A stretch of DNA of 64,000 nt from Octopus bimaculoides (taxonomy: Eukaryota). The DNA lies in the NCBI RefSeq assembly GCF_001194135.2, contig NC_068988.1, positions 93,121,306-93,185,305 on the forward strand, in the 5' to 3' direction. Both the position numbers and the translations under genes were made by a program. Below, piece by piece: positions 30,733 to 55,775 of the stretch; the first letter of the stretch is position 1, and each line of letters opens with the position of its first letter. The notes under the pieces were generated by a model that did no database searches, had not been told where the DNA came from, and saw only the letters and a program-made list of their open reading frames with translations.

Positions 30733-31131
30733 TCAGTCAGGATCATCATCAATCACTGTATCACTCTCAGAAGTCAGGAGTGTGGTAGGAAGGATTTGGT
30801 GATTTTCGGATGCAGCTGGGACAACATCACCATTATCATCATCATCGTTGTTGTTGTTGTTGTTGCTAGAGGTGACATATTCAAGTGGCAGGTCGACAAC
30901 AGTGGAATCGCTTGTAGGCACTTCAGCAATAACAGTGGCATCGTCTGGAGAGATTTCAAGAACAGGACGACAACGATGGGCAGATATGATGACTTCTTCG
31001 AATAAATCTAAAGTAATTACTCCTTCTGAGTCCAACTGCTCAAGAGCCTGGTTACAGAACTTATGTACAGAACACATCAGATCACCAACAGTCCAGCACT
31101 TTGCTTGGACAATGCTGACCACATCGGGAAA
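30733..31131 (-). CDS. PARG-like exon 10 (FPDVV...WTVGDLMCSVHKF...LFEEVI, acidic tail, stop)
   Basis: GTTTCAG| acceptor and TGA at 30735-30733. TVG.L is the terminal PARG motif. Confidence 0.88.
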   Translation of the reverse strand, partial: FPDVVSIVQAKCWTVGDLMCSVHKFCNQALEQLDSEGVITLDLFEEVIISAHRCRPVLEISPDDATVIAEVPTSDSTVVDLPLEYVTSSNNNNNNDDDDNGDVVPAASENHQILPTTLLTSESDTVIDDDPD

Positions 31132-31381
31132 CTGAAACATGAAAGAGAAACAACATTGAGACAGGAAATATCGTTTTCTTACAAAAATTGGGAAATTATA
31201 AATAATATGCAAACATAGGCACATGAGTGGCTGTGTGGTAAGTAGCTTACTTACCAGCCACATGGTTCCGGGTTCAGTCCCACTGCATGGCACCTTGGGC
31301 AAGTGTCTTCTACTATAGCCTCAGGCCGACCAAAGCCTTGTGAGTGGATTTGGTATAAGGAAACTGAAAGAAGCTTGTCGT

Positions 31382-31417
<36 letters not shown>

Positions 31418-34400
31418 GTTTGTGTGTCTGTGTCTGTTCCCGCCCCATCGCCACCACAACAGATGTTGGTGTGTTTATATCTCTGTAACTTAGCAGTTCA
31501 GCAAAAGATACCGATAGAATAAATGCTAGGCTTACAAAGAATAAGTCCGATGGGGGGGGGCGGGGGGATCTATCTGTTCGACTAAAGGCGGTGCTCCGGC
31601 ATGGCCGCAGACAAATGACTAAAACAAATATAAGAATAAAAGAATAGGAGCCAGTCAGGCGGGCCAGGCATTGATCACGGTCAGACAGTGCTTTTTACGT
31701 GCCAGTGGCGCGGGAAACAGTCAGTGGGTACTGGCATAGGCCACGTTCGGATGGTACTTTTTACACGCCGGGTTCGATTCCTGGACTGGGCAATGTGTTG
31801 TGTTCTTGAGCGAAACGCTTCATTTAGCATTACTCCAGTCCACTCAGCCGTAAATGGGTCACACCGGCAATGGACTAGCCTCCTGATCAGGGGAGATGTT
31901 GGCCTGCCCACCTAGCCAGCATGGTAGGAATCATTCAAAAGCTAAAACAATGCAAAGTGCACAGTGATCAGCGATGTATAACAACATCCAATAGCTTGCT
32001 CATGATCATGTGACGTAAAAGATTATAAAAAAAAACAAAAACATTACAGAATAAACGAGTGTTCTTTACTCACCCTGACAAGTTTTTCACTTTGCTTTGT
32101 GTAACATATAAAAACTGGAGTTTGGATGTATGAAGCAACAATCCACTGGAGCAAAACTTCAAGCTGGGGATTTGATCCAGGGATTCCACACGAACTGACT
32201 AACGCTCGACAATTACTCTGTAAATGAAGAAGGAAGACGGGTTGACCCTTTCAGTGTTTAAACCGACCATGTCTGGCCCAAATATTCATGTTTTTTGTTC
32301 AAACTGATCAGATCCTGCCTCTCACACCTACCCTACAATGTCATTCTAAAGATAAACATACAGATCATCAAAATCTTGAAGCTAGGAGATACTGCAGGAT
32401 TACATTATTCACATTTGATGGATATTTGTCCTCATCTTGTTTGTTGTTAACACAATGTTTCAGCTGATATACCCTCCAGCCTTCATCAGGTGTCTTGGGG
32501 AAATTTCAAACCTGGATTCTCATTCCTAAGATATTTTTCCATGTTATTATTATTATTATTATTATTCATACCCAGTTGAAGGTTAGCATGCCTGCCGAAA
32601 TGCTTAGCGGTAATTCATCTGTCTCTACGTTCTGAGTTCAAATTCCACCAAGGTCAACTTTGCCTTTCATCCTTTCGGAGTCAATAAATTAAGTACCAGT
32701 TGCGTACTGGGAGTCAGCCTAATCAACTGGCCAACTCCCCCAAATTTAATATTTATTTCCAAGCTTGATCTCATTGTAGGGCACCTTGAGCAAGTCTCTC
32801 TTACCATAGCCTCAAATTGCCCTTCATTTTTTATGAGAGTAATAAATAATAACTAAAGCTGAAAGCAATAGTTATCTACACAGTCAACTAAAATACTTGA
32901 CGGCAGTGCCCCAGTATGGCCACAGACCAATGATTTACAGCAATAAGAGATAGAAGTAGGCAGACGTTAAGATTTTGGCAAAAAAACATACAAAGGCAGC
33001 AAACTGACAGAATCGGTAGCATCTGTTTTCATGTTCTGAGTTCCAATTCCACCAAAGTTGACTCTGCCTTTCACCCTTCTCGGAGGTCAATAAAATAAGT
33101 ACCAGTCATACAATAGGGTTGGTGTGATCCACTTTCCTACTCCCTTAAAATTGCTGGCCTTGAGACAAATTCTGAAACCAATATTTGCTACAACTAACAA
33201 AGAAAACACCACTTTGACAGAATTCACCCAATTATTCCTTCTTCGGTTTATTGCTGATGTTATTGCTTGTTTTCTCCAGCAAAACTAAAAACTAAATTCA
33301 TCAGAGTAGACCTTGCGGAGAGAGGAAGTCAGTGAGAAGGTCACATATGGCAACAAAAGGACTGTCACTAACAAACACCCGATCACCTGTTTAACCAGCA
33401 CATTAAACAAATGATCGATTACTTAGTTGGGTAAATATTTAACCAATCGACAAACAAAAAAGAAGTGATATCGCACCAGTGCATATACTGTTGTTATTGG
33501 TGTGATGACCCTCCCAAGACACAAGATTTGTTTCAACTCATGAATTCACATCAAGAACCTTGCAGAACAAATACAGAAGTGAAGTTAATTCATTTCACTC
33601 GTAGTGAAATGAGAAGTTTATGTTTTCGCTTCACCAGTGGAAAAAGAAAGGATTAAAGAATAAAGAGAAAAATATTTCAAAAGAAAAATATTTCAACTTA
33701 CTTTGTAAATGTCTCTGCATGAAGAAACGGTTAAAATAGCAGATCCTATGATTTCTTTGGAAGTATTTTCATAAAAGTCATTTAGAGTTTGAGGTGGTGG
33801 AATGTTTTGTGGTTCGGAATCGATGACAGACATTACAGGAAATTTTCTGTGCAAGCATGGATGAGCAAGTTGTGAAAGGTTCAGAGTTAAATCTTCGCTA
33901 TAGTCGCAAGAAGGGTTTTGCAATGTCAGTATGGCAACATGGATCACATTTTTGGCAATTTCATCAGCAATCATTTCAAGGCATTGCAAACATATATTAG
34001 ATTTAAACTGAACATTACATGGAATGACTCCAAAAATATCTACAAAAGACTCGTACATTATTTCCTCTGACACCTGATCAGCAAATGTTGATAGATTATC
34101 ATCACTGTCCAAAGACATAGAATGAATTTCACTGAAATCTTTAGATGTTGGGTCATCAGAAATATCAGTTCGAGAGATCACAGATTCTTGATGTTGAAAA
34201 TTGTCCCTAATATCAAAATATAATAAGGAATCTGGAGAATCAACACAACTCCTAAGTAACTCGTCCTCAAAACTTGCCAAAGTGTTGTCTTTAAATCCAC
34301 TTAAACTACCGCTATGGAAACTTTCCTGGTGCCAATTATTGCGCAAGCTCAACAAAGACTGGCTCGTTGCATCAGTGCGCATCAGTTCCTCAGCAAACTG

Positions 34401-37400
34401 TGAAAGTGTAATATCGCGGAATCCACTCATGCTTGGTTCAATTGTTTTGTTCTGTTCACTCAAAGAACTTTGCCTCTCAAGTTCCATATAGAAATTGGCA
34501 AGATCTTCCTGAGGAACAAGTTTGTGGTCGAAACCAACTCCACAACAGTCCATGTCTTCAACACTAGTCATATTTGGCAAGCTGGGTCCATACTGGTACC
34601 GTAGCAGCTGTCGGTAATAGGGGTTAATAAGGTAGTTCTCATGCAGTTCTAACAAAGCATTTGTAAATAGTTCCTTCGTAATAGTCAAGGCATATTTATC
34701 ATAATCAGGGAGATAAACTCCTTGGCAACTACTTGAGGTATAAGCAGCTTTTACACCATGGCATTCAATACTGTCAATGAACATACTAATTTTGTGAGCT
34801 GTTTTCAGGCTGCTGTCAAGAATATTTGAACTTAAATCATTAATCCAACACCCAAATGATAAGCTATTATTCATCCAACCAGACAATGAAGAAGAGTTGC
34901 TCCAAAGTGATTGTCGTCGACTGGAAGAAGCTGAAGAAGGGTTAGTGCAATTAACTATAGCTTTGGCTTCCCGAAATATTTGGTTAACTAATTTATCTGC
35001 AACAGCAGTTAAGTCTAGCTCTGTAGACGATGGAGAGTCTTTGTATTCTCTGTTGGATGATAAAATAGAACCAACAAGAGAGGAAATATTTAGACTACTT
35101 ATTTCGTTTAGAGAATCGCATAAAATTTCGTTTGAGAGGTAATCTGAATAACTGTAGATGGCCTCTGGTATGGCTGGCCGGAAAATATTGCAAGCTGGGT
35201 CAACAGACATGATGCTAGCATCAGAAAGATCTTTTAGAGTGCTTAAATTGCTGAAAAATGAACACTGTCTTTGTTGTTCTTTGTTTTCACACTGTAAACA
35301 AATTTCTTCTGAATCAACAATAGTCACCTTGATGTCTTCAAATAAATGATCTACATAACCTTGGACAGTGTCCTCTGATATAAAAGAGACATTGGCATTA
35401 CGATCGATGTTTGGTTCAGGGCCAAATTTAATTGGCACAGGTTTGTGCAAATTAGATGGAAGGTGAATATTTTGAAAGTTCTGCATACCGGTTGTATTAT
35501 AAACAATAGCAGCACTCTCTTGGAGTAGGTTTTCTATAAAGTTGGCAGCAAAATCTTGAACATTGTATGTGCCGATTTCTTCATGAATCGTGCCAGGACG
35601 AGTCGTAAGTTCTCGTTTCATGAAAGATTCATACAATTCTTCAAAGTCTGAACTGATGTCAGAGCTGTAACGTGTACTGCAGCTACTTCGACGGGATGTC
35701 AAATCGCTCAAGTTTGAACTTCGACGTCGAAAGTTTGAGATCCAGTCATGATAATCAACATCCAAGTAATCCATCGACGCTGTATGACCAAAGGTGGACG
35801 CCAACAGCCCACTGCCATACAGAGAACAATGTTCTGGTATAAACTTTGCTATAGACTTGAATTCTTTATCAAAACGAGGAGCCACATCATCAGAGTTATT
35901 ACAAGTACATTGAGGGTTCAATTCACATAGAGATTCAGTGAGAATTTCTTTCGTTAAACGCTTGGCAAAACTATCAATATCTTCGACAAATTTCACTTCT
36001 TTTCTTTCCCCTACAAATATAAACATTTTAAAGATTAACAGAAATCAATATGAATGGAAAACAATTCGAAATAAGGAACAAATTTGCATACCGTAAAGTA
36101 TTAGCATTTTATTTTTAAATATTGGGATTCTGTCAATGGGAATCTCAGTCCGTGCAGTCTCAAGATATGATACGTATATCACAAGACATACAAAATGACA
36201 TACAAATGACATATCAAAAACATGTTGAATATAATGTTCCCATACAGGTATTTAGTGGAGGCACATGGCCTAGTGGTTAGAGCAGTGGACTAGTGGTCGA
36301 AGGACAGCGAGTTCGAATCTCAGGCTGGGTGATGTGTGTGTTTTTATGAGCAAAACACCTAAGATCCACGTGGCTCCAGCAGAAGGTAATAGTGATCTTC
36401 TGCTGACTGTTTTGCCACAACTTTCTCTCACTCTTTCCTCCCGCATCTAGCAGCTCACCTGCGACAGACCAGCACCCTGCCTAGGTGGGGAACCTATACG
36501 CCAATGAAACTGGGAAACCGGCCCCTTATAAACCAGGCATGGCTTAAGAAGGAACAAATAACAACATACAGGTATTTGACAATAATTACTCGTCCAGATT
36601 AATTACTAAGTAAACTATATTTTAACGAATAAACACAAAAAAAAACCAAAACCAACCTTCAACATCTGTTGCTTCATTGGCAATGAGAATTTCGTCCGTG
36701 TTAGATGCCACATTGCTTTTATGGGGTGGCGTCAGATTGCTGGATTCAACATTAGTTACAAGAATGGTGTCTTCTACAATTTCAGTAGTAACAGTTTGTG
36801 TCTCGGAGTTGACACAAACCTGATTGAGAAGAGAATCCTCATCTGCAGATGTGTGATTTAGTGAGCTTATTGCTGGCTGAAAGCCAACCAGACATTTATT
36901 GAGATCTCGCAACAGGTATCGGTCCATGTATTGCCTTTGTTGATTGTTAAACTTGTACGGAAGTGTATTGATGGCGCTAAGCATCGTTTCTAGGTTGCCA
37001 CCAGATTTCCGCTGGAGGAAAAGAAAAGAAAAATGGAAACATTTAAATGCAAAGCAAATAAAGAACAGTTCACTTCTGAGAGAAAATGAATGTATCTACT
37101 CCCGCTTCATGTAAAAAGCAGAAAAAAAATAGTATAGTTAACTATTTTTTCAAAGAGATGAGACAAGATTCCAGCCAGGAAAAAGATGACATGGTGATGG
37201 AATAAAATGGGAAAGAGAGCCATGGAAGCAGTACTGGTGGCACACAAAAAAAGCACACAGCACATGCTGTAAAATGGCTGGTGTTAGGATGGGCATCCTG
37301 CAATAGAAACCATGCCAAAGTAGACAGTGGAGCACAGTGCAGTCCTTGGGCCCATCAAATACTGTCAAACCATCCAAGAGGACAGAGGACCGAAATATGT

Positions 37401-40400
37401 GGTGCAGTGCTGTACTCAAGAAGACCTGCCCACCACAACAGAATTGAGGTCCTAAAACCAAGAGGCTACATATAAAGCATTGGTGAGGGTGCTGGTGCCA
37501 CGTATAAAGCACTGGTACTGAAGACACATAAAAAGCACCCAATACACTCTGTGTAGTGGTTGGCATTAGGAAAGGCATCCAGCCATAGAAACCAAACCCA
37601 AACAGACTACGGAACCTGGTGTGACCCCTGACCATACTAGCTCCTTGCAAACTGTTCAACCCACACCAGCATGGTAAACGGACATTAAATGATGATGATG
37701 ATGATGACGACGACAACAATGAAAGTTAAGTATGTTCATTGTGGCCAAAGATGATAACAAAGCAGCATCCAAACATTCTGAGGGTAACTATTGAAGAAAA
37801 ATATGCAGCCTTTAGGGTTACTCACAGAAGCCTTATCACAGTAGTTTCCAGAGAACTTCAAATTCTCTCCATAACCAGAAAACTCAGAAAACTTCTCAAA
37901 GCCTTTAATGGTTATGGCTTCATTGTCATCCATAGCTTCCATGAAGAGAGTAGAGGCCAATAATTCAGGACATGTCATATAAATAATTTCCTCCTGAAGA
38001 TTTTAAAAAGAACAAAAAACAATTTTTTTAAAGACAAAAAAAAATCAATTGACGTAAAATTAAATGTCTCTTGTAAATACAAATCAAAAAATAAAAAATT
38101 TCATAAAATAGAAAGCAACTGTTTCCTACCTGGCATCTACCTTTACTCAAAATGTGACCTCCAAGAAATCTGTTAGCAAATCCAATCTGAAATTTAAGAT
38201 TAATAAAATAAATGCATTAATTAAGTGATAAAATTACTAGACATTACAATTAAAACTTCTATCAAATTAACTGAAATGTTTTCACCTCTCAACAGAAAAA
38301 GAGAACCTTTAGTCTTGTTCCAGTCATGACCATCCCTCTAAAGCTCGCAGCTAAGTAATGCCTTGAGCCCTGGGACTCATAGTGCTCGTTGCCCAGTTTC
38401 CATGGCATAGGAGTTTACCAAGAATACAATAATCCTCCTGAACAGGGCACCAATCCATCGTAGGGTCATTCGTTGAGAGCTGAGTAAACTGCAGTCACAT
38501 AAAATGAAGAGTTTTAACTCAAGAATACAACATAGCGTCTGGCTCAAGAGTTGAAACCATGATCTTGTGGTCATGAATGCAACACCCAAACTACTAGGTC
38601 ACGTGCCTCTATTGTAATGCTGGTGCTACAATAAAATGCACACAGGACTCTCTGTAAAAACAAAAAGGTTCCTATTGAGAAGGGCATCCAGTCATAGAAA
38701 CCAAACCCAAAATGAAATGCAAGAGTTTCAAGCATGATGCTAGTCATCAGCCATTTTGAATTCGAATGACAGAAGTTGATTGTTATTACTGTAAGGCGGG
38801 CTGTGATTCGTCAAAGAAGGTCACATGGTGTCATGGTTTGGTGTTGGTATATGGGTAACAGCATGGCTGACAACTAGCATTGCGCTTGAAACTCCAGAGT
38901 ACCAGGTGTTGAGATGTTTTTATCTTTTAGTTAGATTTCTTGGAGGTAAATATTTGATGCAAGAAAGGATGACGTTCCAGAAAAAAGACAAAATATAAAA
39001 ATTATTTACCAACCTTTAAAGTGGCACTACTGGCATCATATGTTTTACCATTTTCTCGAACATAAATAGGACAGAGACTGGTAGAGCAATTCTTCCATGT
39101 TTCCAGAGTTGGACGTTTTCGTGGTTCCATTACCTAAAAATGAACAAAGAGTTGACAGAAATCAGAATTTACATAATGAAGTGTTTTCTTTTGCAAACAA
39201 TTAAAAAACAGCAGAAGTAAAGAGGAATTAGTCTCAGAAGAAAGAAATCTGGCTGTTTCTTGCAATAAACACATCTAAAGCAAAACCTTTTTGTTCATGC
39301 ACCTTTCAAATACTAAGGTGGGTCCCCAATTTACTATTTTGCTTGCTTGGAGTTCCCAGGTCTTATATGGATCCCCGATTGAGATCATCATCATCGTCAC
39401 TTAATGTCTGCTTTCCATGCTGGCATGGGTTGGACAGTTTGACTGAGGGCTGGCAAGCCAGAAGGTTGCACCAAGCTCCAATCCAATCTGGCAATGTTTC
39501 TACAGCTGGATGTCCTTCCTAACGCCAACCACTCCGAGAGTGTAGTGGGTGGTTTTTACGTGCCACCAGCATGAGGGCCAGTCAGGCAGTACTGGCATCA
39601 GCCATGCTTGAATGGTGCTTTTTACATGCCACCGGCACGGGAGCCAGTCAGGTGGCACTGGTAACAACCACGCTCAAACAATGCTTTTAACATACCACCG
39701 GCACAGGAGCCAATCAGGTGATACTGGCAACGACCACACTCGAATGGTGCTTTTTACGTGCCACGGGCACGGGAACCAGTCAGGTGGCACTGACAATAAC
39801 CACGCTCAAATAGTGCTTTTTACATACCACCAGCACAGGAGCCAATCAGGCGGCACTGGCAACAATCAACTGAAAAAATTTTTTTTTAATTTCTGCTAAC
39901 CTGTCGTTGTATTTCAATTTCTCCAGTGAAATATTGGCCGGCAGAAGCAACTCTACGGAAATAATGAAGAATACAACGCAGTTTGGCACACTGGGATTGC
40001 CTAAGGAAATATAAAAACAGACAAATTATTAGTAAAAAATAAAAAGAAATATTTAACATGGCATTAATTTTCTTCATAGGTATCTGAGATCTTTATATGA
40101 TGGAGTAGGTTTTGGTAAAGATATCACCATAAGAAAATATCAAATGGTGCATCTACTTCAAAATAGTCATTTAAAGGGAGAAACATTAAAGAAACAGGAG
40201 GAATAAAAATATTTAGATGTTCCAATATCTTTTCTCACATTTGAGAGACAAAAGTTTTCAACCCATCCCCTTTCTACTCAAACAATAGGCATGGGCATGG
40301 CTGTGTGGTCAGAAGTTTGCCTCCCAACCATGGGGTTCCGGGTTCAGTCCCACAGCATGGCACTTTGGGTAAGTGTTTTCTAGTATAGCCTCAGGTTGAC

Positions 40401-40840
40401 CAATGCTTTGTGAATGGATTTCGTAGATGGAAACTGAACGAAACTTGCCATATGTGTGTGTGTGTCTGTATTTTCCCCCCAACATCGCTTGACATCCAAT
40501 GCTGGTGTGTGTACATCCCTGTAACTTAGCAGTTCAGCAAAAAGAGACCGATAGAATAAGTACTAGGCTTACAAAGAATAAGCCCTGGGGTCGATTTGCT
40601 CAACTAAAAGGTGGTGCTCCAGCATGGCCACAGTCAAATGACTGAAAGCAGTAAAAAAATAAAAGAATAAAAGGATATACACATATATGTGACAGGCTTC
40701 TTTCAGTTTCCGTCTACCAAATCCACTAACAAAGCTTTGACCGGCCCCAGGCTGTAGTAGAAGACATACACTGGGACTGAACCCGGAACCATGTGGTTGA
40801 GAAGCAAGCTACTTACCATACAGCCATACCTGCGCCTATA

Positions 40841-40873
<33 letters not shown>

Positions 40874-43476
40874 NNNNNNNNNNNNNNNNNNNNNNNNNNN
40901 NNNNNNNNNNNNNNNNNNNNNNNNNNNNNNNNNNNNNNNATATATACATATATATATATCTTATGTTCATATGTGGCTGCTGTGTTTTCTCCAATGAATG
41001 AATGAGTGCATATGAAGGAACACTAAAGAAGAAGAAAATATATGGTAATTCCTGCTACTTACAGAGGAAGGTAGCGAAAGAAGTTAGAGAAATTAATATT
41101 ATTTAGCCGCGATGTTTTCTCTTTCTTCCTCTCTGGAAACAGGCACAGAAATGCACATGAAATGATGGCTGACATTAAGTTACGGCTGACTGCAATGCTT
41201 TTGGCTGCGGAAATATAAAAGAAAATCAATAATTACTTCTCTGAGAGGTACAAATAGAAAGGATATAGTTCACTGACTTGTAACAAATGTGTGTGTGTGT
41301 GTGTGTGAATGTATATTTGCATGAACCTAATCGGTCTTATGTGTGTTTCTATGCATCAATAAACATGAGTTGTTGCTTTTAACTGCAGGTCAATCTTAAT
41401 TCAAGCAGACCTATGATTAAAGATGTTTCAGCTACAACCACGCCAACTTTTATTCAGACGCAGAGTATATAATACTACATTATCAATCATCTTCATTGTC
41501 ATTTAACGTCCACTTTTCCAGGTTTGCCTGGGTCAGACAGAATCTATGGAGGCAGATTTTTCTATGGCTGGATACCTTTCTTGTCACCAACACTCACCTG
41601 TTTCTAAGGTAAAATTTCCCCATGGCCAAACAGGTTTTCCATAGCAGATTGCAAATAAAAGACACTGCTTGTATAACAGTGATACTCATTTACAACTATC
41701 ATGCAATATCATGTCACTGCAAGAAGGCACGTACGCACACACACACACAAATTTAAACACAACAACCATCTTTCTACCATTAGGGAACCCAAGGAGACAT
41801 ACATCAACCCTTCCAGTGTTAATCTAGAGACTTAGAGATGTGAACATCAGCTACATCAAATGGAAGATCCTTTCTAAGACAAGACCTTATGGTAAAGATG
41901 TTCCATATGCTTTCTTGAAAAACAATATCTTTTGAAGAACCTAAGAACCTCCAGGGACTATACGAAAACCAAAAGCTGAGATGTTCTCATCATGTCCACA
42001 TAGTACAAAGTACTTGTTAGCAGGAATTAAAGATAAACCACAAGAATTAAAGGTAATCAATTCCAATGTTGGTTTATGAAACTTTCAACACTCATAAAAG
42101 ACTGTCTGCATTTCCTGCACACTCAGTTCTCTCCCTTTGATTGTTTTCTGTCTTTTTTTCAAAACGGGTGTTCATCCAGACTTTGATTACACAAAACAGT
42201 TGCTAAACTGCTTTGTTGACTTTGCTAGTTTGAACAGTAGTGGAAAAAAATTCAACATTCCATCCAGGAAAACCTGGTTAGCTGAATTTCACAAGGCTTT
42301 TTGTGTTTCTTAATTATTATTATTATTATTATTAATGAGGCAGTGAGCTGGCTGAATTGTTAGCAAGCCGGGCGAAATGCTTAGTAGTATTTCGTCTGTC
42401 TTTACGTTCTGAGTTCAAATTCCACCGAGGTCAACTTTGCCTTTCATCCTTTCGGGGTCGATAAATTAAGTACCAGTTGCGTACTGGGGTCGATCTAATC
42501 CCACCAACTTGGGAAAGAAGGACATCACTTGTATGACAGTGACACTCATTTACAACAATCACATGATGTCAAGGCGAGGAGACACCAACTCTCACGTGCT
42601 CACACACGCAAATATACATCATCATCATCATCAACATTTAACATCCATTTTCCATGCTGGCATGGGTGGGATGGTTTGACAGGGGCTGGCCAGGCAGAAG
42701 ACTGCACTGAGCTCCAACCGTCAATTTTGGCATGGTTTCTACAGCTCAATGCCCTTCTAAATGCCAACCACTTTATAGAGTGTACTGGGTGTTTTTTATG
42801 TAGCACCACCACTGACAGGGTCACCAAGTACCTTGCAACACACACATGCAGAATGGGTTTCTTTCAGTTTCCATCAATCAAATCTTACACATAAGGGTTT
42901 TGGTTGGCCCAGGGCTATAGTAGAAAGCACTTGTCCAAGGTGACACACAGTGGGACTTAACTCAGAATTGAATGGTTGGGAAGCAAACCCCTTAACCACA
43001 CGACCACGTCTGGGCCAATATTTCCTAAAACAAAAGAAAGCAACACCTGGTTAAAGATAAGTGAATAGCAACTTACTGCATTGCTTCCGACAGAGAGGTA
43101 TACCTTCCTGTGGAATTAACTCCTTGATATTACAGGCCATATCGATAACGGCAGGGAAGATGAAGTGCAGAAAGCAGTCCTTTTCATCGATGCTAGCAAC
43201 TTGTTCCAGGAAAATCACAAGGCCTTGATAAACACATGGTTGACTTTCAGCTGTAGACAGCTCCTTGGGTTGACTACTGCTGGGGCCTTCATGGTAGGTG
43301 AATGGGGTCGGTGGACCTTTGCTTCTGATCTGCAGGAAAATCTGCTGGTGGAGCTGGGCTAACCCTTGAGGCGTAGCACCAGAACTTTGACAGTAGAACT
43401 GAAGCTGCAGTAGCTGCTGACTTACAATGTTCCAGTGAGGAAGGTCACATGGGAAAATGACCTTCCTCACACCCAT
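30733..43476 (-). CDS. PARG-family (poly(ADP-ribose) glycohydrolase-like) protein with an insert of about 844 aa rich in AKAP-like helices; 10 coding exons, about 1397 aa
   Basis: Exons 43476(acceptor at 43482)-43077, 41204-41063, 40000-39901, 39133-39014, 38186-38130, 37993-37826, 37011-36657, 36010-33702, 32217-32074, 31131-30733. All are GT-AG, phases match, and the total is 4194 nt. PARG motifs in order: SCAFLCLFP, INFSNFF, AKLRCILHYF, FANRFLGGHILSKGRCQ|EEI, PELLAS.LF.EAMDDNEAI.I.G.EKFS.FSGYG, RDLNKCLVGF, NPQLEVLLQWIVAS, TVGDL. The start codon is inferred, and a small extra exon between 33702 and 32217 cannot be excluded. Confidence 0.9.
32074..32217 (-). CDS. PARG-like exon 9 (SNCRALVSSCGIPGSNPQLEVLLQWIVAS...EKLVR)
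   Basis: TTTACAG| acceptor and AGG|GTGAGT donor, 144 nt. This is where the PARG fold resumes. Confidence 0.88.
33702..36010 (-). CDS. PARG-like exon 8, 2309-nt exon encoding the Ser/acidic, AKAP-helix-rich insert
   Basis: A 777-codon stop-free frame with TTTGTAG| acceptor and AAA|GTAAGT donor. Phase 1 in and phase 0 out match the flanking PARG exons. Confidence 0.92.
36657..37011 (-). CDS. PARG-like exon 7 (...AINTLPY...RDLNKCLVGF, then the start of the insert)
   Basis: TTTTCCTCCAG| acceptor and G|GTTGGT donor, 355 nt. Confidence 0.9.
37826..37993 (-). CDS. PARG-like exon 6 (EEIIYMTCPELL...FSGYGENLKFSGNYCDKAS)
   Basis: CTTCAG| acceptor and TCT|GTGAGT donor, 168 nt. Carries the catalytic EE and the tyrosine-clasp equivalent. 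Confidence 0.94.
38130..38186 (-). CDS. PARG-like exon 5 (IGFANRFLGGHILSKGRCQ), signature loop
   Basis: TTTCAG| acceptor and CAG|GTAGGA donor, 57 nt. Confidence 0.93.
39014..39133 (-). CDS. PARG-like exon 4 (VMEPRKRPTLETWKNCSTSLCPIYVRENG...ATLK)
   Basis: TTTTTAG| acceptor and AAG|GTTGGT donor, 120 nt. Confidence 0.9.
39388..39870 (-). mobile_element. Family C retroposon with a (GAT)n RTE-like 3' tail and an internal 66-bp VNTR
   Basis: The minus strand ends ...GGAAAGCAGACATTAAGTGACGATGATGATG. Related copies lie near 6770, 9837, 17778, 22235, 22570, 37490, 46770, 58290, 59640 and 62810. Confidence 0.7.
39901..40000 (-). CDS. PARG-like exon 3 (QSQCAKLRCILHYFRRV...IQRQ)
   Basis: CCTTAG| acceptor and CAG|GTTAGC donor, 100 nt. 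Confidence 0.92.
41063..41204 (-). CDS. PARG-like exon 2 (KSIAVSRNLMSAIISCAFLCLFP...NINFSNFFRYLP)
   Basis: CCGCAG| acceptor and CT|GTAAGT donor, 142 nt. Confidence 0.9.
41850..42035 (+). mobile_element. Penelope-like element, GIY-YIG endonuclease C-terminal remnant
   Basis: IKWKILSKTRPY ... KAEMFSSCPHSTKYLL resembles the PLE C-terminus (I.WKI....PY...C.LC...E...CPH..K.LL). It contains stops. Confidence 0.55.
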
Positions 43477-43482
43477 CCTCTC
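43077..43482 (-). CDS. PARG-like exon 1 (MGVRKVIFPCDLPHW...FLHFIFPAVIDMACNIKEL...)
   Basis: TTTTTCAG| acceptor, ATG at 43476, A|GTAAGT donor. F...FP....A...L is typical of the start of the PARG catalytic region. Confidence 0.85.
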
Positions 43483-44549: not shown

Positions 44550-46716
44550 TAATCATTTGTATAATTGAAGCATGTAGTATTAGATTTAACAAAGTTGCTG
44601 ACCTTTTCATCAAAGAGCGGTCAACGTTGAGTATAGCACACATATCTTATCTCATGAACTACTTTCTTACAAATGCACAACATATCTAAGAGGTACTCTT
44701 TTAAATGTAACAAGCTTGCAAACACATTTTCACTTGTTTACATGAATTTGGTTTCTGTGGCAATATATTTCTGAAATAAAAACATCCAAATTACCGCAAA
44801 AACCTAGGTTAACAGTACTTTTGTAAATTGTTATAAACATTTATCTGTTATCTAGCATTGACATTTGTCCTTCATGTTTCAGAAGATGACCAAATTAGCA
44901 GCTTAATTCTTTGTAGGTCTTGAGACGGCTTATTAGTTCAATATTCTCATAAAATCCATGCTTACATTGGAGGCACGTAACAGCAGAACCAGGAGCCAGT
45001 GTGGCAGCTCTCCACTCATTAGTTTTTCTGATTATTCCTGCTTTCAGAACATTTTTGTATCACCTCTTTGACCCACCATGTGACAGAGAGTCTCTATCAA
45101 GTGGCAAGATAAAATTCCTAATACTACTGCGCTACAGAGAGCTAATATGTCAAACACATGTTTTCCTAAGTAAACTGCAGTGAAGTGGACATGCATGATG
45201 CCAGACTCCCTAGATATCACACATTAACCCTTTTGTTACCAAATTTCTGTTAAACTATACTGCCTGTTGGAAATTACTATTTGTAAATCTCACAACGAGA
45301 GATATCCAGCAACAGTACTTTGGAGTAGAGATTATTTGCCAACATAACATGGCAGTCCTGGTTTGATGATGATGATGATGATGATGACGATATATTATCT
45401 AATTTAATCTGAGATATCATATCAAATACAGTCTTATATATCATCATTTTGAAGATTTTTCAAGTGTGATCTAACAGAAACATGGCTGCTATTTCTAGCA
45501 GTATTTTATGGTTAGATGACCTTCTGAATGAGAAAAAGCCACAATTCATCTGTTAATTGAAGCGAGAGTGTCTACAGCTGAGTGAAATGTCAATGGTTCA
45601 CTTCCTATCACCAATATTTCCCTCTGTTACAGACAAATATAATTAAATCTCTATTTCTCATCCCCACCCAGCTATGAAAGAGGTTACAATCCATTCATAT
45701 CTCCACACGAAGGTCTCGTCCATACTTATACACTGAGCAGTCCTTGTGTCTTTTTTTCTCACGTGGCTGTGTGGTACGAAGCTTGCTTCCCAACCACATG
45801 GTTCTGGGTTCAGTCCCACTGCATGACACTTTGGGCAAGTGTCTTCTACTATAGCCTCGGGTCGACCAAAGTTTTGCAAATGGATTTGGTAGATGGAAAC
45901 TGAAAGAAGCCTGTCGTATGTATGTATGTATACATCTTTGTGTGTCTGTGTTTGTCCTGTACCACTGACTTGCCAACCGGTGTTGGTGTGTTCACATCCC
46001 TGTAACTTAACAATTTGGCATAAGAGACTGATAGAATAAGTATCGGGCTTAAAAAGAAAAGTACTGGGGTCGATTCATTCAACTAAAATTCTTGAAAGCA
46101 GTGCCCCAGTGTGGCCACAGTCTAATGACTAAAACAAGTAAATGATAGAAGATATTGGCAGAAATACAGAGATTGTAAGTTCAAGACTCACTAAGGATAG
46201 TAATAAGGGGCAGTTGACAAAATTATTAGGGTAACAACTAGAATGCCTTCTAGTATTTATTCTGGCTCTCTCTGATCAGAGTTCAAACCCCGCTTGGTGA
46301 ACTTTTATTTTCATCCTTCATCATCAGCATCATCATCATTTAATGTCCACTTTTCCATACTTTCATGGCAGATTTTTCTACCACCAGATGCTCATCCTGT
46401 CACCAACCCTCACTTGTTTCCAAACAAAGTAATATTTCCGCATGGCTGGACATGCTTTTCACAGAAGACTGCCAACAAATATCCTCACTTGTATTCTTTT
46501 ACTTGTTGCAGTCATTTGACTGTGGCCATGCTGGAGCACCGCCTTTAGTCAAGCAAATCGCCCCAAGGACTTATTCTTTGTAAGCCTAGTACTTATTCTA
46601 TTAGTCCCTTTTGCCGAACCACTAAGTCACAGGGACATAAACACACCAGCATCGGTTGTCAAGCGATGTTGGGAGGACAAACACAGACACACAAACATAT
46701 ACACACACACACACAC

Positions 46717-53463: not shown

Positions 53464-54801
53464 AGTTAAGTTCGGACACATGTACGCATACATTTGCAAT
53501 ATGCCTGTATCTGAGCAATACATACTTACATAGACACATTTACATACAGTGATACGCACATATATATTTACATAGTAAATACGGGCATTGTACATTTACA
53601 TGGATAAGAACATATTTGCATATACGCTTGAATAAAGGACATCAACATACAAATATCGGTTAATATCTACCTTATTTACATTCACGGATGGAGAAGAAAT
53701 ACATACATCCGCAGAGGACGTGTGTGTGTGTGTGTATATATATATACATACATACAAACGCACCTCCGTTTCCATATATATGTATGTATATATATATATA
53801 TATAATTTACCATATCAATTTTACATTTATGTATAGGAATATATATTTACATCCGTGCATATGAAACATAAAAATGATGACATCAAAACCATCTTAATGA
53901 ATTTAAGAACAATGTCTTTTGGGGATTTTTGGGGGTGGTTTTTAATTGAAAGAAAGAAGAAAAGAACGGGTACCTGTCGAGTGGAGGGATTGTGTAGACT
54001 ATTTCCTTTTTCTTAGCCAGCGCTGAGAAAAGGAAATTTAACAAACATCCATCAGTTTAGAAATATTCCTTCCTCGTCGGTTCGATGTCCATTGATGTTA
54101 AAATGCTTTCAGATAAACATGAAGAAAGTATTGGAGATGCGTGAAGAATATATCAAAACTCTTGCTTATTTCAAGCCTCTTGGTTACGGCTGCCGTTGCT
54201 TATTTGTCTGTTTGTTATAAAGGATATCTTTTAAATAATACAGAAGCATCCGTTGTTTGAGAAGAGAGAGAAGATAGGTCGGTGGTGTTGCAAGTAAAAT
54301 GTCAGCGACGAGTGGCAACGACCAACATTGAGTCGTTTGTCAGTGACAAATATATTCCAGAAGGATCAAGGCCACGTTGTCACAGGAACCCCTTAAAGAT
54401 TATTCTTTCTCCTTTCTTCTATGTAAGATGTAAAATACGAAGAACGAGCAGCAAGCGTTGGAAAGTAATTGTTTGGTTGGAGGTGGGTAAATTTTTGTGA
54501 TGTAGTTTTTTTTATATAAAGATATTTTTTTCCGTTTGCTTTTCTTGTTGCCTGGTGTCTTTAACGACCGTTATAGGAACTTGGAAATAAGAAAGGGAAG
54601 CAAAAATTAAGTTAGAATTAATAAATAAAGATGAAGCTTTGATAAAAAGCGGTAATCGTGAAGGAATGAGTAGGATACATTGGAAAAGAAACGGTTTGGA
54701 ATAGTTGTTATTGTTTTAAAGTTGGTTCAATATTAGACGAAGAGTACGCAACCATATTTAAAGTAAGGGCGGTAATTCTGTCTTTACTGTGTCGAAATAG
54801 T

Positions 54802-55775
54802 CATGTGGTACAGCATCGGTGAAGCGCCGGACTACGTATGTTGCTGCCACATGTGGCACGGCATCGGGAGAGTGCCGTATTACACGACTTACTGTCACGT
54901 GTGGTTCAGAATCGGAGAAGCGCCGGACTAGATAAGTTGCTGTCACATGTAACACAGCATCGGGGAAGCGCCGGACTACATATGTTGCTGTCACATGTAG
55001 CACAGCATCGGGAAAGTGCCGTGTTACACGACTTACTGTCACGTGTGGTACAGAATCGGAGAAGCGCCGGACTAGATAAGTTGTNNNNNNNNNNNNNNNN
55101 NNNNNNNNNNNNNNNNNNNNNNNNNNNNNNNNNTCAGAATCGGAGAAGCGCCGGACTAGATAAGTTGCTGTCACATGTAACACAGCATCGGGGAAGCGCC
55201 GGACTACATATGTTGCTGTCACATGTAGCACAGCATCGGGAAAGTGCCGTGTTACACGACTTACTGTCACGTGTGGTACAGAATCGGAGAAGCGCCGGAC
55301 TAGATAAGTTGTTGTTACATGTGACACAACATCGGGGAAGCGCCGGACTATATATGATACTGTCACATGTGGTACAACATTGGGGAAAGTGCTGGACTAC
55401 ATGTATTGAAAGTGCCGGACTACATGGTGTAGCATCGGAAAAGCGCCGGATTAGATATGTTGTTGTGACGTGATACATCATCGGGAAAGTGCCAGTATAC
55501 ATGTGGTACAGCATGTACGCTGTTGCCACATGTAGAACAACATCGGCAAATAACCAGACTACATGTGTTATATGTGGCACATCATCAGGAAAGGGAGTAC
55601 ATGTGGAACAGCATCAATGAAATGCCAGACTAGATATGTTGCTGTCACATGTGGGACAGCATTGGGGAAGCACTGGACTACATATGTTGCTGTTGCATGT
55701 GGTATAACATTGAGAAAGCACCAGACTCACATGTGGTACAGCATCAGTGAAAAGAGCCAGACTGAATATGTTAAT
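54802..55775. repeat. 48-bp minisatellite, about 20 units, with a 144-bp trimeric higher-order repeat
   Basis: Unit CATGTGGTACAGCATCGGGGAAGCGCCGGACTACATATGTTGCTGTCA. The ORF track shows 16-aa periodicity. There is an internal assembly gap at 55085-55133. Confidence 0.93.

Follow-up and report, generated by a model that had tools for sequence, protein, structure and literature searches.

A putative PARG-derived pseudo-enzyme with AKAP-like features encoded in the Octopus bimaculoides genome

The LOC106877645 Gene and Its Exons

A 64,000-nucleotide stretch of the Octopus bimaculoides genome (RefSeq assembly GCF_001194135.2, contig NC_068988.1, forward-strand positions 93,121,306 to 93,185,305), hereafter the window, carries on its minus strand the gene LOC106877645, whose product is related to poly(ADP-ribose) glycohydrolase (PARG). 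An initial annotation, made from the letters of the window, had described a remodeled PARG-like active site and placed it between positions 32074 and 38186; both ends are exon boundaries, 38186 being the first base of the exon that carries an IGFAN motif and 32074 the last base of the exon that encodes a degenerate phosphate-binding loop. Using open frames, splice sites and intron phases, ten exons were joined into a single unbroken frame of 1399 codons with GT-AG at all junctions. Apart from two residues ahead of the start methionine, the model agrees at every position with RefSeq XP_014782076.1 ("uncharacterized protein LOC106877645 isoform X2"), a product of 1397 amino acids whose numbering is used for the octopus protein throughout.

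All exons lie on the minus strand and are given in window positions. Exon 1 of isoform X2 (43077..43482) contains the start methionine (MGVRKV..., ATG at ~43476) and the first part of the N-terminal helical domain of PARG, running to ...IPLCRKQC and ending in phase 1. Isoform X1 (XP_052826228.1) uses an alternative first coding exon, MSGELPHWLLVLLLRASN, at 44966..45019 (low coordinate approximate), which joins the acceptor at 43482; it is 20 residues longer than X2, 18 coming from the upstream exon and two from the part of exon 1 ahead of the X2 methionine. Exon 2 (41063..41204; (T)KSIAVSRNLMSAIISCAFLCLFPERKKEKTSRLNNINFSNFFRYLP), which continues the helical domain and has fitting GT-AG sites and phases, and exon 3 (39901..40000; (L)QSQCAKLRCILHYFRRVASAGQYFTGEIEIQRQ) were found by alignment; two candidate exons considered for this part of the gene, 42084-41944 and 41986-41822, had no Pfam match and no convincing acceptor and were rejected. 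Exon 4 (39014..39133; VMEPRKRPTLETW...GKTYDASSATLK) encodes T245 and Y246 (codon 39040-39038), which stand in place of human I726 and E727, two residues that touch the adenine. The IGFAN exon, exon 5 (38130..38186; IGFANRFLGGHILSKGRCQ), holds G256 (38183-38181), N259, H265 (38156-38154) and Q273 (38132-38130), and an intron (38130/37993) separates this glutamine codon from the two glutamate codons, E274 and E275, of exon 6 (37826..37993; EEIIYMTCPELL...SEFSGYGENLKF...DKAS). Exon 6 also encodes F311 and Y314 (codon 37873-37871), and matches Pfam PARG_cat_C on its own at 9e-19.

The insert described below begins in exon 7 (36657..37011; RKSGGNLETMLSAINTLPYKF...LNKCLVGFQPAISS...), which encodes N344 (36969-36967) and ends in phase 1, and is continued by exon 8 (33702..36010), a single exon of 2309 nt that supplies ~770 residues of the insert, among them blocks conserved in the wider family and amphipathic helices of the A-kinase anchoring protein (AKAP) type. 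The degenerate phosphate-binding loop, residues 1222-1233, lies in exon 9 (32074..32217; SNCRALVSSCGIPGSNPQLEVLLQWIVASYIQTPVFICYTKQSEKLVR) together with V1224, P1230 (codon 32181-32179) and K1258 (32097-32095); this exon alone matches PARG_cat_C at E 0.0019 over profile positions 170-203. Exon 10 (30733..31131; FPDVVSIVQAKCWTVGDLMCSVHKFCNQ...) encodes the C-terminal helices of a PARG/AKAP11-type module, after which come an acidic tail and the stop codon.

Two observations concern splicing around the insert. Exon 7 contains an internal in-frame phase-0 donor (...SLLNQ followed by GTTTGT) at ~36822 that is compatible with the phase-0 acceptor at 32217; splicing from it to exon 9 would yield a compact, insert-less PARG-like isoform of ~570 amino acids, and neither RefSeq isoform uses it. 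In O. vulgaris, the model CAI9727037.1 is missing precisely the 48 residues encoded by exon 9, a 144-nt exon whose skipping keeps the frame.

A PARG Fold Interrupted by a Long Insert

The octopus protein retains the PARG fold, that is, the helical domain and the macro-type catalytic fold. Pfam PARG_cat_N (PF20811) is matched at 1.4e-22 over residues 97-213, spanning exons 1-3, and PARG_cat_C (PF05028) at 1.3e-44, and among solved structures the PARG chains of fly, human, mouse, rat and Tetrahymena are matched with E values of 1e-25 to 1e-18. An AlphaFold2 model of residues 1-393, the portion of the fold that precedes the insert and the loop, reached a predicted local distance difference test score (pLDDT) of 84.5 and a predicted template modeling score (pTM) of 0.86. 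In a Foldseek search with this model all 42 significant matches were PARG structures, with query-normalized template modeling scores (TMq) of 0.68-0.77 and E values down to 1e-23; mammalian and fly enzymes gave a TMq of ~0.75, and human and mouse PARG one of ~0.76. An insert of ~850 amino acids, lying between "LNKCLVGF" and the phosphate-binding loop, breaks up the macro fold; neither a Pfam match nor a sequence match in the PDB was found for this insert.

Remodeling of the Active Site

Active-site residues were mapped by PDB-chain alignment (E 1e-25 to 1e-24 for the best chains) combined with family alignments. Human numbering was taken as the index in chain 4a0d plus 445, which assumes that the chain comprises residues 448-976 and two tag residues; residues named in the literature land correctly under this assumption. 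The alignment bears out the initial annotation in finding N740 (N259), Q754-E755-E756 (Q273-E274-E275) and the tyrosine clasp Y795 (Y314) retained. The changes that it had listed are likewise all present. D737 is replaced by G256, turning VDFAN into IGFAN, at a position showing 100% conservation across 54 other PARG domains; G746, the third glycine of GGG and equally invariant in the 54 other domains, is replaced by H265, so that where the signature is GGG-X6-8-QEE the octopus protein reads GGH-ILSKGRC-QEE; and D825 is replaced by N344 (AID to AIN). The loop TGNWGCGAFGGD has become ALVSSCGIPGSN at residues 1222-1233, with F875 replaced by P1230, and departs from the phosphate-binding loop signature (T/S)G(N/H/K)WGCG.F.G(D/N), of which only C872, G873 and G876 are kept. 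The suspected exchange at F902 was identified as K1258, an assignment that requires a one-residue indel relative to human PARG and is backed by the family alignments ("YYTF" vs "CYTK").

Further changes, beyond those first listed, are I726T, E727Y, Y792F (F311), F759Y, A826T, A848C, N869V (V1224) and K882E. In the adenine/ribose' pocket Y795 is thus accompanied by E727Y, N869V and F902K. The 54 other PARG domains have 48 columns with a conservation of 90% or more; at these the octopus protein is off at 15, the next worst domain at 6 and the median domain at 1, a divergence far above the ordinary. A missed exon supplying a canonical loop had been named beforehand as a finding that would overturn this picture; a six-frame motif scan revealed no such exon anywhere in the window, and tblastn of the window with the canonical loop and C-terminus from 8 relatives returned exons 9 and 10 only.

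The roles of many of these residues are known from structures and mutagenesis of human and bovine PARG (PMC3519477, PMC3741636, PMC6906431). Asp737 is buried and supports Glu755, and the corresponding bovine mutant D738N is without activity. Glu727 hydrogen-bonds the adenine N6, Phe902 stacks on the adenine, Tyr795 contacts both adenine and diphosphate, and the 2'-OH of the ribose' is bound by Asn869. Backbone NH groups of Gln754, Gly871, Gly873, Ala874 and Phe875 anchor the diphosphate, Phe875 also walls the ribose'' site, and Asn740, Glu755 and Glu756 touch the ribose'' hydroxyls (PMC3519477, PMC3741636, PMC6906431). Set against these roles, the octopus protein keeps the ribose''-side trio N740/E755/E756 together with Y795, and replaces D737, E727, N869, G871, A874, F875 and F902. 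Proline has no backbone NH, so the exchange of F875 removes that group at this position of the loop. Because residues that hold the substrate or support catalysis in the published structures and mutagenesis are replaced, we infer that canonical poly(ADP-ribose) (PAR) hydrolysis has been lost and, probably, canonical ADP-ribose and PAR binding as well. The proposal that ADP-ribose binding and hydrolysis were lost or changed is therefore supported as a prediction from published residue roles. UniProt automatically names the entry A0A0L8GD58 "poly(ADP-ribose) glycohydrolase", and NCBI leaves the protein uncharacterized; the enzyme name probably over-annotates a protein from which these residues have been lost.

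A Family of Insert-Bearing PARG Proteins

An exhaustive HMMER search of 1.84 billion representative sequences returned 2332 relatives, and the top matches, where long members were examined, are proteins of ~1250 to 3200 residues with the same architecture. Long members occur in bivalves (Pinctada KAK3092578.1, Mizuhopecten XP_021351302.1), gastropods (Haliotis XP_067669039.1, Patella XP_050413638.2, Biomphalaria, Plakobranchus), the brachiopod Lingula (XP_013400831.1), the nemertean Tubulanus (XP_074657360.1), amphioxus (Branchiostoma XP_066266530.1), the sea urchin Diadema and the starfish Acanthaster (XP_022093463.1); a member from the coral Stylophora has ~1080 residues, and models from Mya and Lottia are annotated without parts of the architecture. 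All of these proteins are unnamed, "uncharacterized" or automatically named, and they are 31-42% identical to the octopus protein over the matched parts. Their inserts, ~700 to 2700 residues long, are serine-rich with many helices and lie between a conserved LNKA.VGF motif and the phosphate loop, a position that the octopus insert shares and that is identical in 13 long proteins from six phyla (molluscs, brachiopod, nemertean, echinoderms, cephalochordate and cnidarian). Several molluscs carry a separate canonical PARG of ~720 amino acids, which makes the long protein a paralogue; for a canonical PARG or short paralogue in Octopus, no Octopus entry was present among the 120 of 1718 matches listed. 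Insert-only matches were also obtained as unannotated open reading frames (ORFs) from ENA and Logan contigs, most probably representing the same big exon in other animals.

Within lophotrochozoans the insert contains the conserved blocks W..FRRRSSNLSD, RRSS.STR, SSDFSSEFEE, GFRD..LS.FAEEL and SGF(K/R)D..L..FE.EL. The octopus insert keeps family blocks as W..FRRRSSNLSD, RRSSCSTR, SSDISSDFEE, GFRDITLSQFAEEL and SGFKDNTLASFEDEL.

A motif scan of 150 representative matches, counting those in which the motifs were located, found VDFAN, GGG..QEE and GNWGCGAFGG, (S/A)TGNWGCGAF.GD or a close variant in the members outside Octopus, and AID was confirmed in eight long members. The remodeled set (IGFAN, GGH, AIN and no canonical loop) was encountered only in O. 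bimaculoides, O. sinensis and O. vulgaris, so that the substitutions, whose conservation in orthologues had been put forward as a check, are the same in all three species. The remodeling thus appears to be a lineage-specific event within a family that otherwise looks catalytically competent. Independently eroded signatures do occur elsewhere in this PARG subfamily: GGR..QEC in the damselfly Ischnura elegans (XP_046393465.1), VCFGN..QEET in the flatworm Macrostomum lignano (PAA84612.1), whose proteins are short and have no insert, and a further variant reading REE. The damselfly and flatworm substitution sets differ from that of the octopus, whose combination is found in neither, and loss of catalysis seems, from these motifs, to be recurrent in this clade. 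In the literature searched there was no description of full-length invertebrate proteins that join PARG to an insert, an absence there that is not proof of novelty.

Selective Constraint on the Octopus Protein

All ten exons were mapped to the O. sinensis locus CM016866.1:565391-590462, and substitution rates relative to O. bimaculoides were computed by the method of Nei and Gojobori. The O. sinensis gene spans ~21 kb, compared with ~12.7 kb here, and consists of the same ten exons, 94-99% identical, with expanded introns. Between the two species the ratio of nonsynonymous to synonymous rates (dN/dS) is 0.044 in the PARG fold vs 0.102 in the rest of the protein, with dS of ~0.10 in the fold and ~0.17 in the other regions. 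Within the fold the helical part stands at 0.022, the N-terminal macro part at 0.034 and the C-terminal macro part at 0.177; elsewhere the ratio is 0.085 in the big exon, 0.15 in the linker and 0.22 in the acidic tail. Amino-acid differences number 5 in 465 positions of the fold vs 34 in 930 elsewhere (Fisher p = 0.005). No part of the octopus protein is thus more constrained than the PARG fold, whose low dN/dS speaks for a retained structural or binding role instead of a relic.

Relationship to AKAP11

In the one paper of the searched literature that connects the two families, the C-termini of the vertebrate anchoring proteins SPHKAP, AKAP3, AKAP4 and AKAP11 are reported to be remote homologs of the PARG macro domain, the N-terminal part of which they would have lost (PMC11377751; Nat Commun 2024). 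A profile built from the insert and C-terminus of eight members of the insert-bearing family retrieved vertebrate AKAP11 at E values of 1e-9 to 7e-7 from 5.8 billion proteins. Comparison of the family alignment with an AKAP11 alignment by hhalign gave 98.5% probability (E 3.4e-15) over the last 82 columns, and an octopus-led alignment gave 98.1% (E 7.8e-14). By these profile comparisons the last ~85 residues of the family are homologous to the AKAP11 C-terminus, in the form of a DPQL..LQW.AAS...W.VGDL...LF.WLL module. AKAP11 C-termini score 52-62 bits against a hidden Markov model (HMM) of the subfamily C-terminus and 26-38 bits against a canonical PARG model, a difference of 24-27 bits, and since they score higher against the subfamily than against canonical PARG, AKAP11 is specifically related to the insert-bearing subfamily. 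The octopus C-terminus scores 75 bits with the subfamily HMM and 33 bits with the canonical one. The Lingula C-terminus matches Pfam AKAP_110 (PF05716) below threshold (5.9e-4, 18.7 bits vs a cut-off of 25), and one insert ORF gave a weak SmAKAP match. An N-terminal macro remnant in AKAP11, suspected by eye, received a probability of 0.4% from hhalign and was dropped.

The octopus insert contains candidate amphipathic helices of the AKAP type, LEMIADEIAKNVIHVAILTL, DFAANFIENLLQESAAIV and VADKLVNQIFREAKAIV. A consensus for RII binding is matched 7 times in the insert, as against 0.93 +/- 0.98 times in 1000 shuffles, with a maximum of 5.

A Probable Pseudo-Enzyme Core in a Putative Scaffold

The reading that we favor, with a probability of about 0.75, is that the octopus gene encodes a catalytically dead PARG paralogue with a pseudo-enzyme core; anchoring of protein kinase A (PKA) by its insert is predicted with less certainty. 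The protein belongs to an old family of animal proteins in which a long insert splits an otherwise complete PARG domain immediately ahead of the phosphate-binding loop. On the way to Octopus, substrate-holding and catalysis-supporting residues were replaced (E727 and F902, which both contact adenine, the residue that contacts the ribose', most of the loop around the diphosphate, the third signature glycine and the buried aspartate), with QEE, N740 and Y795 staying in place. The PARG domain may now act as a folded module, structural or docking, within a scaffold whose functional elements would reside in the insert, as RRxS phospho-sites and as amphipathic helices of the kind known to dock PKA regulatory subunits. 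The octopus route would parallel, by different means, the loss of catalysis in vertebrate AKAP11-type proteins. The scaffold role suggested in the initial annotation gains support in this way from the constrained fold, the conserved insert blocks, the AKAP-type helices and the homology to AKAP11, and the octopus protein appears to be a new, lineage-specific and catalytically degenerate variant of a PARG-derived scaffold family.

Several observations weigh against this reading. The catalytic glutamate pair, N740 and the tyrosine clasp are retained, and the very low dN/dS of the fold would be compatible, too, with continued binding of some ligand. The remodeled S-C-G-I-P-G-S loop has two glycines, and as the contacts are made by the backbone it could in principle bind phosphate. 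The prediction of PKA anchoring in the octopus derives from a short consensus and from homology limited to the C-terminus; the insert's own homology to AKAP11 is weak and the octopus protein has no Pfam AKAP_110 match. Among cephalopods the sampling covered the genus Octopus.

The first of these observations lead to the alternative that specificity was altered and not lost, the protein retaining a ligand-binding or catalytic macro-type module for a non-canonical ligand, such as another derivative of a nucleotide, or a phospho-ligand for which S-C-G-I-P-G-S together with QEE, N740 and Y795 would form the site. We consider this unlikely. The conservation of QEE, N740 and Y795, the confidently modeled fold, and dN/dS values of 0.02-0.03 in the two N-terminal parts of the fold, below that of the insert as for a functional pocket, all agree with it. 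D737G, however, removes a buried aspartate whose replacement by asparagine inactivates bovine PARG, E727, F902, N869 and most of the loop G871-G877 are gone, and a structural or docking role would account for the low dN/dS just as well. The substitution set is moreover found in no relative outside one genus, giving no sign of a new conserved pocket. Decay toward loss, with the domain a pseudogene or relic following the N-terminal part of vertebrate AKAP11, is the least probable of the readings considered: the changes at invariant positions are unusually many and vertebrate relatives did lose the whole catalytic half, but neither a stop nor a frameshift occurs in 1399 codons, the listed substitutions are identical in three species, and a dN/dS of 0.044 in the fold at a dS of ~0.10 between two Octopus species led to rejection of the pseudogene reading.

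It is also very improbable, if slightly less so, that the architecture is an artefact of annotation, with the 777-codon ORF representing a nested gene or optional exon and the true product being compact, running from the donor at ~36822 to the loop exon. The big ORF does have an ATG of its own five codons upstream of the acceptor and a stop two codons past the donor, the internal donor and the acceptor of exon 9, both of phase 0, could be joined in frame, and the O. vulgaris model without exon 9 indicates that models of the locus vary. Against this, the phases fit at both junctions of the big exon (1/1 and 0/0), the insert is present in both RefSeq isoforms, and the same insertion point recurs in long proteins of at least six phyla, with conserved blocks shared among lophotrochozoans; one unannotated ORF, moreover, passes from PARG core to insert with no intervening intron. 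A compact isoform, even if real, would bear the same remodeled site.

Other Features of the Window

The window has ~38% G+C and contains introns, repeats resembling short interspersed nuclear elements (SINEs), microsatellites and assembly gaps. The SINE-like elements produce similar pseudo-ORFs, in both orientations, in introns at 31250-31700, 37150-37720, 39400-39810, 40280-40810, 42530-42900 and 45660-46080 and elsewhere. TA and CA microsatellites and runs of N are numerous. Outside the gene, at 54750-55580, a tandem repeat of ~39 nt, broken by an N gap, is open in several frames (...VRRFPDAVLHVTATY...).

Implications for the Origin of AKAP11-Type Scaffolds

The family in which a full PARG domain is combined with an AKAP-like insert is a by-product of this analysis that is of more interest than the octopus variant itself, as it makes the origin of AKAP11-type scaffolds testable and suggests that many invertebrates may couple the anchoring of PKA to the removal of PAR. 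A tentative scenario, which as a whole we hold to have somewhat less than an even chance, is that the long invertebrate paralogues are the missing link between PARG and the AKAP11, SPHKAP, AKAP3 and AKAP4 proteins, that their ancestor was bifunctional, at once an AKAP and an active PAR hydrolase, a state kept in most invertebrates, and that the octopus and vertebrate lineages silenced the enzyme independently. If so, the ancestor physically coupled cAMP/PKA signaling to the removal of ADP-ribose; in the octopus, point substitutions silenced the enzyme and left its fold intact, in vertebrates the catalytic half was deleted, and the octopus protein offers a natural snapshot of an enzyme turning into a pure scaffold. 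As a candidate natural pseudo-enzyme it is a clean case, with a constrained and intact fold from which substrate-holding residues are gone and with close relatives bearing canonical sites as controls.

Comparison with Known PARG and AKAP Proteins

Compared with canonical PARG (human PDB 4B1H; Drosophila 8ADJ), the octopus protein has the same two-part architecture at ~25% identity, and QEE, N740 and the tyrosine clasp are common to both. It differs in the third glycine, in D737, E727, N869 and F902 and in most of the loop, all of which are replaced, in the ~850-residue insert that precedes the loop, and in having no long N-terminal regulatory region.

With the long invertebrate paralogues it shares the domain order, the insertion point and the C-terminal "LQW.AAS...W.VGDL" module, and with those of lophotrochozoans also the insert blocks FRRRSSNLSD, RRSS.STR, SSDFSSEFEE and GFRD..LS.FAEEL; the blocks RRSSEP, LSRE.LTNAF and EEY.TA of the long paralogues are missing from it. 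The long paralogues keep VDFAN, GGG..QEE, AID and (S/A)TGNWGCGAF.GD and so look catalytically competent, whereas the octopus protein does not.

AKAP11 (AKAP220) and the octopus protein are alike in their C-terminal ~85 residues, which are homologous, and in being long and serine-rich with repeated amphipathic helices. AKAP11 is without a phosphate loop, and both proteins are classed here as non-catalytic, the octopus protein on the strength of its predicted residue losses. PKA binding is proven for AKAPs and predicted for the octopus protein. AKAP11 has no detectable helical domain or GGG/QEE region, comparison of its N-terminal 172 residues with the PARG alignment not being significant, whereas the octopus protein keeps the entire fold.

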